Made by a program: the position numbers and the translations under genes. Positions 57,001-64,000 of a stretch of DNA of 64,000 nt are shown piece after piece. Location: positions 22,940,001-23,004,000 of the forward strand of contig OZ059896.1 of NCBI GenBank assembly GCA_964057225.1, read 5' to 3'. The notes beneath the pieces were generated by a model. It was not told the origin of the DNA. It searched no databases and worked only from the letters and a program-made list of their open reading frames with translations. This stretch comes from Auanema rhodensis. Its lineage: Eukaryota; Animalia; Nematoda. Every line of letters begins with the position of its first letter. Position 1 is the stretch's first letter.

Positions 57001-57623
57001 TAGTCTAAAAACAAATTTTTATTAATATTGGTTCATGGTAACCATGTCTTTGAAATTTACGTGAACTTTAATTTATGCTAATTAAATGTACACGTGATGT
57101 GCACTTGGTATGTAACTCGCTTCACGTGAAAGATAAAGAGATGCGGTTTTCAAAATTAGATTTTCCATGTCCATATTAGTCTAAAAACAAATTTTTATTA
57201 ATATTGGTTCATGGTAACCATGTCTTTGAAATTTACGTGAACTTTAATTTATGCTAATTAAATGTACACGTGATGTGCACTTGGTATGTAACTCGCTTCA
57301 CGTGAAAGATAAAGAGATGCGGTTTTCAAAATTAGGTTCCCCATGTCCATATTAGTCTAAAAACAAATTTTTATTGATATTGGTTCATGGTAACCATGAC
57401 TTTGAAATTTACGTGAACTTTAATTTATGCTAATTAAATGTACACGTGATGTGCACTTGGTATGTAACTCGCTTCACGTGAAAGATAAAGAGATGCGGTT
57501 TTCAAAATTAGATTTCCCATGTTCATATTAGTCTAAAAACAAATTTTTATTAATATTGGTTCATGGTAACCATGTCTTTGAAATTTACGTGAACTTTAAT
57601 TTATGCTAATTAAATGTACACGT
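1..57623 (+). repeat. 176-bp tandem satellite array, left arm (327 full monomers + 67 bp)
   Basis: The monomer TGGTTCATGGTAACCATG...TTTTTATTAATAT starts at 1, 177, 355, 531, 707... The period is 176 except three 178-bp units (177, 707, 885) and two 175-bp units (1-bp deletion near 27417 and 37624). Most monomers differ from consensus by only a few substitutions. Confidence 0.99.
57621..57623 (+). repeat. Possible 3-bp target-site duplication CGT (second copy 62717-62719)
   Basis: Left junction TGTACA-CGT|TTAATG; right junction CACGG|CGT-GATGTG. The CG of the right copy also fits the element's repeat, so it may be microhomology. Confidence 0.5.
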
Positions 57624-58110
57624 TTAATGTTTATTGTTCAATATCACAGGTTAAGACAGTAGCTGTTAAGTCATGGAGTGAAAAAATCAAGAACCATTCA
57701 ATAAGAACATAAAAAAGGACTTTTAATATTGTAAGTTCGATAAGAGCTCGCTTATCTATGATCAATAGTGAACAGTCTGCCAAATAAAATTCTTGCTGTA
57801 TGCTTGGGGTTTGTTCAGCACAATGGCTGACCTCACTAATGTGGTTGTTAGGTACGGTGGTACTCGTGATGTGAGGCAAGCCCGTTCTAGCAATTTGGAG
57901 GTAACTAGCGTCCGATCCGTATGACTAATGTCTATAGGAATAGTGACGAAGTAACAATTATTGAGAAGGGACAAAGAAAAATAGATGGTAGACTGTTGCC
58001 ATGTGGTCATAGAGAAGTGTGAAAAAATACGAACTACAAATAAAAAGGAGCCTGATAAAAGAAAAAAAATAGTTTTTCGAGAGGTGAGAACATTAATTAC
58101 AATGGATGGT
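57624..58110 (-). other. LINE 3' UTR (~487 bp)
   Basis: Lies between the ORF2 stop and the satellite junction. The sense strand ends ...GAACAATAAACATTAA. Confidence 0.85.
57630..57635 (-). promoter_or_regulatory. Polyadenylation-type signal AATAAA at the element 3' end
   Basis: Plus-strand TTTATT lies 6 bp from the 3' junction. Confidence 0.6.
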
Positions 58111-61100
58111 TTACAAATCAATTGGAGCAGAGAGCAGGTGTTTTTTAAAATTATGAACATTAGTAAGGTTGATAAGGTTTTCAGGTAGATCGTTCCATGT
58201 TTTGATGCTTCTGTACTCAATACCATTTCTTGTCGCCTTTTTCCGAAGCTCGGGATAGTCGATATTCCATTGGTGTCTGCGAAGAGAGTGGGTGAAATGT
58301 TTAATTTGAAAAATTCTTAAAATACTGTCCGTTGATACGTCTTTAATTTGAGAGAAATAGAAACCTAGATCAGTTACCTGTCTCCTGGTTGATAGTTCTT
58401 GAGCATTCAAAAAAGTGAGCTGACTTTTGTAGTCGGAAAAAATTCCTGCTCTTGAGAAGACTGCTCGCAAGAATTTTTTTTGAACCATCTCAATACGAGA
58501 TATTTTTTTAGATACTTGGGGAGACCATATCACGGATGCATATTCAAGGATTGGTCGAACGTAGCTGCAAAAAAGGTTGAACATAAATGAAGGTGATCTA
58601 GAGTAGAAGCAACGTAGAAGGATGCGACATTTGAGAGCTGCGGCGCAAGAGATGGCGTTTATGTGACAATCAAATGTTAGATTGTTATCAGTTAAGACTC
58701 CAAGGTCTTTATAATGAGGTACAAAGTCTAAAGGAAACTCACCAAAGGTAAATGGCTCGGTGGGGTTGAGGGTTGAGCTATTATTGCACACAATCATAAT
58801 TTTGGATTTGGTGGTGTTGACCATCATTCCATTATTTTTGCACCAGGCGTTGATTGTGTTTAAGGCAATCTGTAGACTTACCGGATTAGTACTGTATAGT
58901 TTGAGATCATCGGCAAAAAGTGTAGGATGAACGTCTTCAGGGAGAGAAGACGTAATGTCATTAATGTAGAAAAGGAATAGAAGAGGACCGAGAACAGTGC
59001 CTTGTGGGACACCACAAGATAAGTTTACAGAAGTAGAAAGAGAACCATTGACAAGAACTGAGTAAGATCTGTCAGTGATGAAGTTTTTGAGAAAAGTTTG
59101 AAGAGAACCGCAGATACCAATGGTTTTAAATTTGTGGAAAAGAACCGAGTGATCAATTAGATCAAAAGCTTTAGAGAAGTCTATAAAAGCAGTATAGACT
59201 GGAATGTTTTTATCTAAACATGATCTCCAGGCAATATGATTGTTAATGATTGCTGATATGGTATTACGTTTAGGAAGAAAAGCGTGCTGGTGAGCAGATA
59301 TAGATCCAGTAGAAATGCCAAAGTGGAGGAGCGGGGGTGAAATGAGTCGCTCAAAAACTTTGGAAAGACTTGGTGTTAATGATATAGGGCGATAGTTTGA
59401 AGGATTAGAGCGATTTCCGGATTTGAAAACAGGACGGATCCAAGCTTTCTTCCAGTCCGGAGGGCATGAAGAAGAAACGAGTAAATTGTGAGAAATGAAG
59501 GCAAGTGGGTAGCAAAGAGTAGAGGCGCACTGATTAAGAAAGTAGTAGGGAATGCCATCAGAAGAAGTAGAAACTCTGAGAGGAAGATGAGAAAGAACTT
59601 TATAGACTTTTTCGGGAGAAATGTCTATAAAATCAATGATAGAAGAAGGGCGAGAGGAGCTGTTGATTAAATCCGATGAAATACTTGGTTTGACAGAAAA
59701 AGAGCTTGCAAAAATGGAAGCTTTTTCTGTGTCTGTCGAGTATATTTCTTCACCAAGTCTAATCGTGGGGATATCTGAAGAGCAACCACCGAGACGAGTT
59801 CTACAGAAGCGATAAAAAAGTTTGGGGTTATTGGTTGAAGCAATGTGTTCTTTTTCCAAAATAGACTTTTGTTTAATAAGTCTATCTAGTTTTATAGTTA
59901 GTTTTTTGCGGAGAAGCTCGTCACGGTGGCAAATAGATGAACTGAGCCTTTTGATGTAACAGTAGAGATCCGCAATATTGCGGTCAACTTTTTTTCTACG
60001 CCTAGGTTGTTTGTGAGGAACGAATACAGAGATTATGGATTGTAGGATGTTGATGAATTTGGAGTAAGAGTCAAGAGGGGAAAGACCAGATAATACCAAA
60101 GAAAAGTCGATGCTGACAAGATGGCGATTGATGGCATTGAAGTCGGCTCGATAGAAATTGAGTTGAGAAAAGTTGGAAAGTGAGGAGGTATTGAAGAGTG
60201 TATTGGAAGAGAAAGGAAGGGTATCCAGAGGGGATACAGGGGTGTTGATGATGATGGAGAATGTAACCGAGAAGTGATCGGAGTTACCCAATGGAGGGGA
60301 GCGTGATATATTAGATATGATTGAAGGATTGTTTGTGATAAGGTAGTCTAAAATGTTGTTACCACGTGTAGGAAAATTGACAAGTTGATCAGAGTGACTA
60401 CTTTGGAGAAATTGAATAATTGATTTACTAGAAGGAGATGAGAGTGAGGACTGAAGAAGATCCCAATTGATATTAGGAAAGTTCAGGTCACCCGTAATAA
60501 AGAAAGAGCGGTTAGAAATATGACCATTGAGATCAGAAAGATAAGAACAAAAATCAGAGTGAGAAGCAGTAGGGGAACGATAACAAACGGAGAAAACCGA
60601 GTTGTTAGAGGTTAGAAGGATGGTAACATATTGAACCGATGAAGAGAGGGGTGAGGAGGAGAGTAAAATTGAGTTAATTTGTTTTTTTAAGAACAAAAGA
60701 GTACCACCGCCGCGTGAAGAATGCTTGTCTGCTCTGAATATGTTGTAATGATCATTTAGAGGAAGATGATCAGAAGAAAAATCAGAAAACAGCCAAGATT
60801 CCGATATGGCGATGATATCAGGGGATGAGATAGAATGAATGATTGTGAGGAAATGAAGTTTATTGAGAATAGAACGTGCATTGTAACAGTGGACTGATAG
60901 TTTAACAGGGACATGAGAAGAAAGCAAGCATGGTGAAGAAGCGGTTTTAACGAAAGGACATGTTGTTACAGGACCGAGATAAAGATGTTGTATCGGATCC
61001 GCTTCTTGATCTAGTAGGAAGTTCGGCAGTAGGCTTAACAGAGCGTGGTGGATTCTTTCTTCTTCTTGGGCTAATAGAAGATTTTTTCTCCAGAGAAAGA

Positions 61101-61194
61101 ATTTTTGACCTGCCAGTTGAGCGACTATTCCTACTAGATTTAGAAGGGGGGCTAGATATAACACCAGTATCAATATTGGACGGACATTGGACAT
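58111..61194 (-). CDS. LINE ORF2: apurinic-like endonuclease + reverse transcriptase (1027 aa)
   Basis: APE motifs YNARS, ISESW, RGGG, YRSP, GDLN, PTRGNNILD, SDH (60274-60282). RT motifs NYRPISL, QHAF, DFSKAFD, GVPQG, LGPLLFLFYIND, FADD (58906-58917), YKDLGV. CR1-type C-terminus YVRPILEYA..W.P / IE.VQK.F / WNDLP. No evident RNase H or CCHC knuckle. The true start is uncertain. Confidence 0.96.
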   Translation of the reverse strand: MSNVRPILILVLYLAPLLNLVGIVAQLAGQKFFLWRKNLLLAQEEERIHHALLSLLPNFLLDQEADPIQHLYLGPVTTCPFVKTASSPCLLSSHVPVKLSVHCYNARSILNKLHFLTIIHSISSPDIIAISESWLFSDFSSDHLPLNDHYNIFRADKHSSRGGGTLLFLKKQINSILLSSSPLSSSVQYVTILLTSNNSVFSVCYRSPTASHSDFCSYLSDLNGHISNRSFFITGDLNFPNINWDLLQSSLSSPSSKSIIQFLQSSHSDQLVNFPTRGNNILDYLITNNPSIISNISRSPPLGNSDHFSVTFSIIINTPVSPLDTLPFSSNTLFNTSSLSNFSQLNFYRADFNAINRHLVSIDFSLVLSGLSPLDSYSKFINILQSIISVFVPHKQPRRRKKVDRNIADLYCYIKRLSSSICHRDELLRKKLTIKLDRLIKQKSILEKEHIASTNNPKLFYRFCRTRLGGCSSDIPTIRLGEEIYSTDTEKASIFASSFSVKPSISSDLINSSSRPSSIIDFIDISPEKVYKVLSHLPLRVSTSSDGIPYYFLNQCASTLCYPLAFISHNLLVSSSCPPDWKKAWIRPVFKSGNRSNPSNYRPISLTPSLSKVFERLISPPLLHFGISTGSISAHQHAFLPKRNTISAIINNHIAWRSCLDKNIPVYTAFIDFSKAFDLIDHSVLFHKFKTIGICGSLQTFLKNFITDRSYSVLVNGSLSTSVNLSCGVPQGTVLGPLLFLFYINDITSSLPEDVHPTLFADDLKLYSTNPVSLQIALNTINAWCKNNGMMVNTTKSKIMIVCNNSSTLNPTEPFTFGEFPLDFVPHYKDLGVLTDNNLTFDCHINAISCAAALKCRILLRCFYSRSPSFMFNLFCSYVRPILEYASVIWSPQVSKKISRIEMVQKKFLRAVFSRAGIFSDYKSQLTFLNAQELSTRRQVTDLGFYFSQIKDVSTDSILRIFQIKHFTHSLRRHQWNIDYPELRKKATRNGIEYRSIKTWNDLPENLINLTNVHNFKKHLLSAPIDL

Positions 61195-61987
61195 TTGAAT
61201 TGGACTTAGAAACAGTAGAAGTATTTAGAGAAACTTGTGGAGTAGAAGTGGTTGAACGGGCAGTTGGTTTACGTGGAATCTTTATAAGTTTGAGATCGCG
61301 TACAATGAAAAGTGAGTCACTATTATCCAAATTTTTCGCTTTTGCTTCTTCGCGCAGTTTTTTTTCAAGATCTACCTCGAAGGGAAGATAATCGCGACGA
61401 ATAAACGTTTTAGACAAGCTTTCAAAACATATGGCTTTGTTTGTCCTAATGGTTTCAATGATTTTGTCACGTAAATCAACTGTTGAACATGAAATAATGA
61501 GAGGGCCTGGAGAATTAGATTTGAGAGTTGAGCGAGTAATGGTTATTTGGTTGCTGTTAATCAAAGAAATCAAGGTGTCATCATTAGACTTTCCAGCTAT
61601 AAGTTTGAGAAGGGCGGTAGGGTCCGAGGGAAACTCAGATGAATCGTGAGGAACCCTAAACCAAACCGCTCTTTTCAAGCGATAAGAATACCTTGATTCC
61701 TCAGATCGAACTTTTTGAACATGACACATAATACTGGTAGAAGTGGTTTGAGAAGGAGAAGAGGCATTGAAAGTTGGAACATTTAGGAGTTGTTGCTCTA
61801 AAGTATCGATACGTGATTTGAGGTTTGTTTCGATAGTTTTGATACGAGCTTCATTAGCTGCTACATTGATTTTAATACTGTTGAGTTCGTTTTTGATGTC
61901 AGATGAAAGTTGAGAGAAAGATTCTCGGAAAGATTTGGAAAGAGACTCAAGAGCATCAGTAAAGAAATCTTTTGTAACAGCTGTCAT
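60947..61987 (-). CDS. LINE ORF1, putative RNA-binding/chaperone protein (346 aa)
   Basis: Lies upstream of ORF2. N-terminal heptad coiled coil (about aa 10-70). Motifs KRAVWFRVP, PGPLIIS and FIRRDY..E...EKKLR resemble the RRM+CTD type of ORF1 in CR1/L1 elements. Ser/Thr/Arg/Lys-rich C-tail. Confidence 0.85.
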   Translation of the reverse strand: MTAVTKDFFTDALESLSKSFRESFSQLSSDIKNELNSIKINVAANEARIKTIETNLKSRIDTLEQQLLNVPTFNASSPSQTTSTSIMCHVQKVRSEESRYSYRLKRAVWFRVPHDSSEFPSDPTALLKLIAGKSNDDTLISLINSNQITITRSTLKSNSPGPLIISCSTVDLRDKIIETIRTNKAICFESLSKTFIRRDYLPFEVDLEKKLREEAKAKNLDNSDSLFIVRDLKLIKIPRKPTARSTTSTPQVSLNTSTVSKSNSNVQCPSNIDTGVISSPPSKSSRNSRSTGRSKILSLEKKSSISPRRRKNPPRSVKPTAELPTRSRSGSDTTSLSRSCNNMSFR

Positions 61988-62211
61988 ATTGAGAAAAAAG
62001 ATAAGATTAAGAAACAGAAAAATAAGAAAAAAGAATGTAAAGACAGTGGTATAAAGAAGTGAAAGACAATAAATAACAATGTAAAAGACAGAAAGGACAG
62101 AGAGAATTGGAAAAGAGAGAGAGTAATAAAATAGAAGAGATAAAAGAAAAAGAACAAGAAAAAAAAAATGAAAGAATTAAGAAAGCGTACCTTTAAGAAC
62201 CAGTCCGACGA
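61988..62211 (-). other. Unique part of LINE 5' UTR, strongly pyrimidine-rich on the sense strand
   Basis: The plus strand is mostly A/G, and no upstream ATG was seen on the sense strand. Confidence 0.8.
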
Positions 62212-62718
62212 AATGAGGTCACGGCGCGGAATGAGGTCACGGCGCGGAATGAGGTCACGGCGCGGAATGAGGTCACGGCGCGGAATGAGGTCACGGCGCG
62301 GAATGAGGTCACGGCGCGGAATGAGAATGAGGTCACGGCGATGAGAATGAGGTCACGGCGCGGAATGAGGTCACGGCGCGGAATGAGGTCACGGCGCGGA
62401 ATGAGGTCACGGCGCGGAATGAGAATGAGGTCACGGCGATGAGAATGAGGTCACGGCAATGAGAATGAGGTCACGGCGATGAGAATGAGGTCACGGCGAT
62501 GAGAATGAGGTCACGGCGATGAGAATGAGGTCACGGCGATGAGAATGAGGTCACGGCGATGAGAATGAGGTCACGGCGATGAGAATGAGGTCACGGCGAT
62601 GAGAATGAGGTCACGGCGATGAGAATGAGGTCACGGCGATGAGAATGAGGTCACGGCGATGAGAATGAGGTCACGGCGATGAGAATGAGGTCACGGCGAT
62701 GAGAATGAGGTCACGGCG
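62212..62718 (-). repeat. GC-rich minisatellite at the LINE 5' end: 26 copies of core AATGAGGTCACGGCG (plus strand)
   Basis: Unit lengths from 62212: 18x5, 24, 20, 18x3, 24, 20x14, then a final core at 62704-62718. Linkers are CGG, CGGAATGAG or ATGAG. One substitution (62458 G>A). Confidence 0.98.
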
Positions 62719-64000
62719 TGATGTGCACTTGGTATGTAACTCGCTTCACGTGAAAGATAAAGAGATGCGGTTTCCAAAATTAGATTCCCCATTTCCATAT
62801 TAGTCTAAAAACAAATTTTTATTAATATTGGTTCATGGTAACCATGTCTTTGAAATTTACGTGAACTTTAATTTATGCTAATTAAATGTACACGTGATGT
62901 GCACTTGGTATGTAACTCGCTTCACGTGAAAGATAAAGAAATGCGTTTTTCAAAATTAGATTCCCCATGTCCATTTTAGTCTAAAAACAAATTTTTATTG
63001 ATATTGGTTCATGGTAACCATGACTTTGAAATTTACGTGAACTTTAATTTATGCTAATTAAATGTACACGTGATGTGCACTTGGTATGTAACTCGCTTCA
63101 CGTGAAAGATAAAGAGATGCGGTTTTCAAAATTAGATTCTCCATGTCCATATTAGTCTAAAAACAAATTTTTATTAATATTGGTTCATGGTAACCATGTC
63201 TTTGAAATTTACGTGAACTTTAATTTATGCTAATTAAATGTACACGTGATGTGCACTTGGTATGTAACTCGCTTCACGTGAAAGATAAAGAGATGCGGTT
63301 TTCAAAATTAGATTCCCCATGTCCATATTAGTCTAAAAACAAATTTTTATTGATATTGGTTCATGGTAACCATGACTTTGAAATTTACGTGAACTTTAAT
63401 TTATGCTAATTAAATGTACACGTGATGTGCACTTGGTATGTAACTCGCTTCACGTGAAAGATAAAGAGATGCGGTTTTCAAAATTAGATTCCCCATGTCC
63501 ATATTAGTCTAAAAACAAATATTCATTAATATTGGTTCATGGTAACCATGTCTTTGAAATTTACGTGAACTTTAATTTATGCTAATTAAATGTACACGTG
63601 ATGTGCACTTGGTATGTAACTCGCTTCACGTGAAAGATAAAGAGATGCGGTTTTCAAAATTAGATTCCCCATGTCCATATTAGTATAAAAACAAATTTTT
63701 ATTAATATTGGTTCATGGTAACCATGTCTTTGAAATTTACGTGAACTTTAATTTATGCTAATTAAATGTACACGTGATGTGCACTTGGTATGTAACTCGC
63801 TCCACGTGAAAGATAAAGAGATGCGGTTTTCAAAATTAGATTCCCCATGTCCATATTAGTCTAAAAACAAATTTTTATTGATATTGCTTCATGGTAACCA
63901 TGACTTTGAAATTTACGTGAACTTTAATTTATGCTAATTAAATGTACACGTGATGTGCACTTGGTATGTAACTCGCTTCACGTGAAAGATAAAGAGATGT
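62717..64000 (+). repeat. 176-bp tandem satellite array, right arm (~7 monomers, runs off window)
   Basis: Resumes at CGTGATGTGCAC (monomer position 65) in the same orientation, continuing the monomer broken at 57623 (position 67). Confidence 0.99.

Follow-up and report, generated by a model that had tools for sequence, protein, structure and literature searches.

Among the described systems, the closest to the locus studied here are the 5' monomers of mouse and rat L1 elements (A, Tf and Gf types). In these elements tandem units of about 200 or about 650 bp sit at the extreme 5' end, upstream of a unique tether and ORF1, their number varies between copies, and the loss of units at each cycle must be compensated. 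Both stepwise 5' addition during second-strand priming (PMC6454616) and unequal crossing-over have been proposed (PMC6454616, PMC5381506), but how the lost units are replaced has been open since the mouse L1 monomers were described. Second, target-specific non-LTR retrotransposons (R1, R2, TRAS/SART and the Tx1-group) insert at an invariant bottom-strand site and in a fixed orientation into a multicopy repeat, which is an RNA gene, a telomere repeat or a microsatellite. None of them is known to carry a short-unit 5' array. The 5' junctions of R1 and R2 are variable, with microhomology, extra bases and upstream-target duplications (PMC2718515). Third, the 3'-tail repeats of stringent LINEs (for example UnaL2, or the octamer repeats of CR1) and telomerase both involve reiterated copying of a short terminal template by re-alignment of the nascent strand. 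Finally, SLACS/CZAR of trypanosomes and the TRE5-A modules of Dictyostelium belong to site-specific LINEs with repeated or modular 5' regions, in which the repeat units are far longer and no evidence of polar regrowth is known.

Here, we analysed a window of 64,000 nucleotides of Auanema rhodensis DNA (contig OZ059896.1 of GCA_964057225.1, positions 22,940,001 to 23,004,000), in which an intact 5.1-kb APE and RT LINE on the minus strand (57624-62718) interrupts a 176-bp satellite and begins with an array of short tandem units (Table 1). Tandem Repeats Finder (TRF) reported a period-20 array at 62212-62718 (25.8 copies, 94% matches, score 767), and parsing on the sense strand gave 25 full and 2 partial units of 18, 24 and 20 nt. 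The preliminary description of the array was confirmed in every detail, including the unit sequences, the 6-nt duplication that turns the 18-mer into the 24-mer, the 4-nt deletion that turns the 24-mer into the 20-mer, and the two 98-bp blocks, which are identical. TCATTC and TGACCTCA are present in every unit. Compared with the L1 monomers, the units are much shorter (16-24 nt across the families examined), so that the array is an analogue rather than a member of that type. The units also show no sequence relation to the L1 monomers, the element group and host phylum are different, and the element is target-site specific. It also differs from 3'-tail slippage in that the reiteration is at the 5' end of the element, which is the end of cDNA synthesis or the start of second-strand synthesis, and in that the units are much longer than typical 3' microsatellite tails. 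Literature searches found no description of short-unit 5' arrays on LINEs or of these elements. A paper on the 180.9-Mb HiFi/Hi-C germline assembly of Auanema rhodense, in which about 61% of the genome, mostly tandem repeats of 167-504 nt, is eliminated from somatic cells, does not mention them either (bioRxiv 10.64898/2026.08.27.747507).

Table 1. Features of the LINE, its 5' array and the flanking satellite, in window coordinates.
Feature	Coordinates	Strand	Description
Outermost partial unit	62710-62718	-	CGCCGTGAC; the last 2 nt (62717-62718) could equally belong to the satellite (microhomology)
Distal block	62430-62709	-	14 x 20-mer; the unit at 62450-62469 carries C>T; this 20-mer exists nowhere else in the genome
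Middle part	62308-62429	-	24-mer, 3 x 18-mer, 20-mer, 24-mer (order from the outer end); part of the exact 98-bp duplication 62248-62345 / 62346-62443
Proximal block	62218-62307	-	5 x canonical 18-mer (CTCATTCCGCGCCGTGAC); the same unit is found in all copies of subfamilies A and B
Innermost partial unit	62212-62217	-	CTCATT fused to the unique 5' UTR
5' UTR block	62185-62211	-	TCGTCGGACTGG...AAGGTACGC; conserved in families A, B and D
Rest of the unique 5' UTR	61988-62184	-	T-rich
ORF1	60947-61987	-	346 aa, no Pfam match
ORF2	58111-61194	-	1027 aa; APE endonuclease (Exo_endo_phos) and reverse transcriptase (RVT_1) domains; no RNase H domain found
3' UTR	57624-58110	-	Ends in ...CATTAA without an A-tail; joins the satellite at the same nucleotide as all 10 other A/B copies that lie in the satellite
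Satellite, 3' side of the element	1-57623		176-bp satellite (98% homogeneous), the target of the element; 57621-57623 are the 1-3-bp target-site duplication
Satellite, 5' side of the element	62717-64000		Resumes in phase

A search of the assembly (180,911,798 bases, G000 below, with C numbers for its contigs and L numbers for the loci examined) recovered 11 further copies in two subfamilies, of which subfamily A is 98.5-100% identical to the window copy and subfamily B is about 70% identical at the DNA level. Ten of the eleven, like the window copy, lie in the satellite in the same orientation, and all of these are joined at the same 3' junction, ...TAA|ACGTGTAC, whereas one further copy, on C8, lies outside the satellite. 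Most 5' junctions lie just after CATCACGTG, with target duplications ranging from 1-3 bp in the window to about 70 bp, and they show microhomologies, extra bases and one 23-nt duplication of upstream target, as described for R1 and R2 (PMC2718515). The target, however, is a non-coding satellite. Family D, examined at its 5' ends, enters the same satellite in the opposite orientation, and its 5' junctions (L013-L018 and L026) cluster at ...TTTACGTGAACTTTAA, about 20-25 bp from the A/B site, so that related families use two different spots of one monomer. The APE and RT ORF2 without an RNase H domain and the 3' ends without an A-tail (...CATTAA or ...CCAATAA) fit a CR1-clade LINE, but the best outside hits are only 26-30% identical and carry no clade names, and the CR1 assignment made in the preliminary description remains presumptive. 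In the window copy ORF1 and ORF2 overlap by 248 nt (60947-61194) in different frames, and ORF2 expression needs frameshifting or re-initiation. A scan of 57500-62900 against Rfam found no HDV-like or other ribozyme, as would mark a 5' ribozyme-processed LINE of the R2 type, nor any other known RNA, up to E = 1.

The array belongs to the LINE and is not an independent host minisatellite. A dimer of the 18-mer, allowing 2 mismatches, occurs at 9 genome places and the reversed control at none. Eight of these places are 5' ends of full-length A or B copies, and the ninth is the B copy outside the satellite (L068, G000:C8:26443829-26443930), whose array begins at CATTCC of a unit and is fused directly to about codon 43 of ORF1, so that the leader and the ORF1 start are deleted. 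Subfamilies A and B differ by 30% along the body but share the identical 18-mer, with 2-25 full units per array. Homologous arrays also head two more distant families. Family D (57-59% ORF2 identity) starts with 18-23-nt units around a canonical 19-mer in about 2 to 31 copies, and family C (about 60% ORF2 identity) has 18-mers in about 7 and about 66 copies, plus one 16-mer variant; families with ORF1 at 34-46% identity are not included in this comparison. In a search with the TGACCTC array pattern, all nine distinct array loci among the 100 matches examined (of 265) lie 170-250 nt upstream of a LINE ORF1. In contrast, three outside contigs with ORF2 at 26-30% identity (L072, L073 and L074) show no tandem repeat upstream of ORF1, although they may be 5'-incomplete. 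Three outcomes that had been named beforehand as refuting the preliminary interpretation were not observed, since every full-length copy has an array, the array is found only at LINE 5' ends, and arrays differ in number and composition between copies.

When the unit types were aligned, TGACCTC (GAGGTCA on the other strand) was invariant in families that share only 57-68% ORF2 identity, while the rest of the unit and most of the 5' UTR have changed. The AGGTCA-type core pointed out in the preliminary description is the one block conserved across unit types of four families. The only other conserved piece of the 5' region is the 27-nt block at the start of the unique leader (CGYCGGACTGG ... AAGGTRCGC), which has counterparts in L064-L067, L013-L018 and L026, and within which AAG|GTRCGC resembles a splice donor. 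The conservation of TGACCTC argues against the array being a functionless by-product of a reverse transcriptase, or second-strand polymerase, that stutters at the template end, because a by-product would not keep the core identical while neighbouring bases drift. Stuttering is also seen at 3' junctions, and unit number ranges from about 2 to about 66 with no visible optimum, but we consider this reading very unlikely. The proposal that the units are initiators is weakly supported at best. The TCAKTY-like motif is present in the A/B unit, in one family-C unit type and in family D (as TCAGTT), but it is absent from the other family-C unit type. Five or six of the nine A/B copies begin within CATT/TTCC of the unit, often with one extra T, which fits a start at the A of TCATTC, whereas the window copy starts elsewhere in the unit and family D starts are scattered over the unit. 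The element was not found in the three small sequencing runs listed for the species, and no reads aligned to 60900-62330, which is not evidence of silence.

Arrays change fast compared with the body of the element. L061, L062 and L063 differ by 1-3 substitutions in 4590 nt, but their arrays are 20 full pure 18-mers; two full 19-mers plus a partial one, then two 18-mers; and six T>C variant units plus five 18-mers, respectively. Derived units are private to one insertion, as the 20-mer occurs only in the window and the 19-mer only at C7. The whole pattern cannot be explained by 5' truncation of one master array, because the copies diverge after 2, 5 and 5 proximal units. The change is also polar. 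In seven arrays (window, L062, L063, L014, L018, L016/17 and L026) a multi-unit block of derived units sits at the outer end with canonical units next to the body, and none shows the reverse, although two arrays have single substituted units near the body. Where several derived forms occur, the ancestor is proximal and the descendant distal, in the order 18, 24, 20 in the window and 19, 21, 23, 18 in L014. In the array at C4:448307 the TGACCTC pattern also fails to match only within the outer 140 bp. Two other roles can be rejected: the array is not coding, since units of 19-21 nt break any frame, and it does not help 5' joining through homology with the target, since only 2-5 nt are shared and the junctions do not use them.

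An alternative explanation is that the array is part of the LINE but varies by ordinary minisatellite instability after insertion, through replication slippage, unequal sister exchange or polar gene conversion driven by a flanking break hotspot, while retrotransposition only copies or truncates it. Arrays do change in place. L016 and L017, duplicates of one insertion with identical flanks and bodies 99.84% identical, differ by three internal indels of 6, 2 and 1 units, the exact 98-bp duplication in the window is a typical unequal-exchange product, and human minisatellites can mutate in a polar way without any RT. The window array also needs at least two different join phases (24-mer, then 20-mer), and no intermediate copy is present in the assembly. 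However, the in-situ differences are internal, with the outer block kept in L016 and L017, and L022 and L023 (99.79% identical) have identical arrays. Insertions only 0.02-0.07% diverged have wholly different outer blocks, while duplicates 0.16-0.21% diverged keep theirs. In-place change is thus internal and slow compared with the differences between fresh insertions, and we regard this alternative as doubtful.

To examine the direction of growth further, we compared the phase of the scar with that of the terminus. If units are added by running to an end and jumping back, the scar of a mis-registered jump should lie at the phase where the array finally stops. For each of the seven arrays, we marked the position or ambiguity range of the change that defines the derived unit and the phase of the outer terminus, allowing for microhomology. 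The circular distances were 0, 2, 1, 2, 0, 0 and 0, and their sum of 5 compares with a null mean of 24.6 when the terminus phase is random (exact P = 0.0014). The exact test on the summed distance was used because a naive product of per-array probabilities was misleading, and since the sites were annotated by hand and n is 7, the result is support rather than proof. In the window, for example, the 20-mer is the 24-mer minus four bases between CTCAT and CGCC, and the array ends at CGCC. Exchange between internal units does not predict this pattern.

Taken together, we propose, with a probability of roughly 0.55, that the array is an integral, functionally constrained 5' module of a group of LINE families that insert site- and orientation-specifically into the satellite. 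In this view the RNA starts inside the array, so that the array is carried to new sites, and its outer part is rebuilt during or with each retrotransposition by repeated re-copying of the terminal unit(s), with mis-registered re-alignments creating new unit lengths that are then reiterated. The most likely job of the monomers would be to act as redundant promoter or transcription-factor sites, as a short-unit analogue of mouse L1 monomers, and tip growth would offset 5' loss. The sequences themselves establish that the array is integral, conserved, variable, polar and private to each copy and that scar and terminus phases match, whereas the link to retrotransposition, the polymerase step, the transcription start and the promoter role are our inferences. 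The preliminary interpretation is supported only in part, notably for addition at the outer end, which rests on the polarity of derived units in seven arrays and on the match between scar and terminus phases. The window array, with its two join phases and a 98-nt re-copy, took several events, and its body stands about 20 substitutions apart from the L061-L063 group, which leaves room for several generations. Since the array travels to new sites, it must lie inside the transcript, and it is also possible, though unlikely, that the monomers act at the RNA level as repeated binding sites (UGACCUC) for the ORF1 or ORF2 protein, needed for packaging or for second-strand steps, as with the 5' RNA segment that R2 protein binds. 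The invariant part is indeed a 7-mer and not the initiator-like motif, but this putative binding is inferred from conservation alone, no structure or Rfam family was found, and GAGGTCA is equally a nuclear-receptor half-site, a family that is very large in nematodes. Tip growth may apply in this case as well.

The data favour re-copying of the terminal unit(s) at or with insertion over symmetric in-situ slippage, and two routes fit such re-copying. The first, suggested in the preliminary description, is telomerase-like, in which the element's own reverse transcriptase, on reaching the 5' end of its RNA inside the array, repeatedly slips back and re-copies the terminal unit(s). The second is slippage just after second-strand priming on the cDNA end, as proposed for mouse L1 monomers (PMC6454616), and it gives the same pattern of outer-end polarity and scar phase. 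The first route is possible but less likely than not, and if true, every insertion would regrow its own 5' promoter or binding module, which would be a telomerase-like end-maintenance cycle at the 5' end of a LINE and a general answer to how monomer-headed LINEs survive 5' erosion. Because the units are so short, each addition leaves a readable scar, and the direction and register of growth can be read at single-nucleotide resolution from the sequence alone. The elements are young, few in number and, apart from the C8 copy, sit in one satellite of a culturable nematode, which makes a direct test feasible, and the conserved GAGGTCA core points to a specific factor that could be identified. Re-alignment of the polymerase at template ends is also suggested by three 3' junctions that carry reiterated tail and target pieces (L063, L069 and L070).

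At L063 (G000:C6:21562516-21571414), two subfamily-A copies lie head to head, in which a copy truncated at about element position 1003 is inverted and abuts, through a run of T, the outer end of the array of a full-length copy, with both 3' ends facing the satellite. This could be a twin-priming-like double event or a LINE-into-LINE insertion. In addition, identical 3' fragments of the LINE recur at spacings of about 3.26-3.5 kb at G000:C3:10703833-10714935 and of alternately about 1.35 and 1.7 kb at G000:C4:2668352-2673225, and pieces of the element seem to have been amplified there as part of higher-order tandem repeats.
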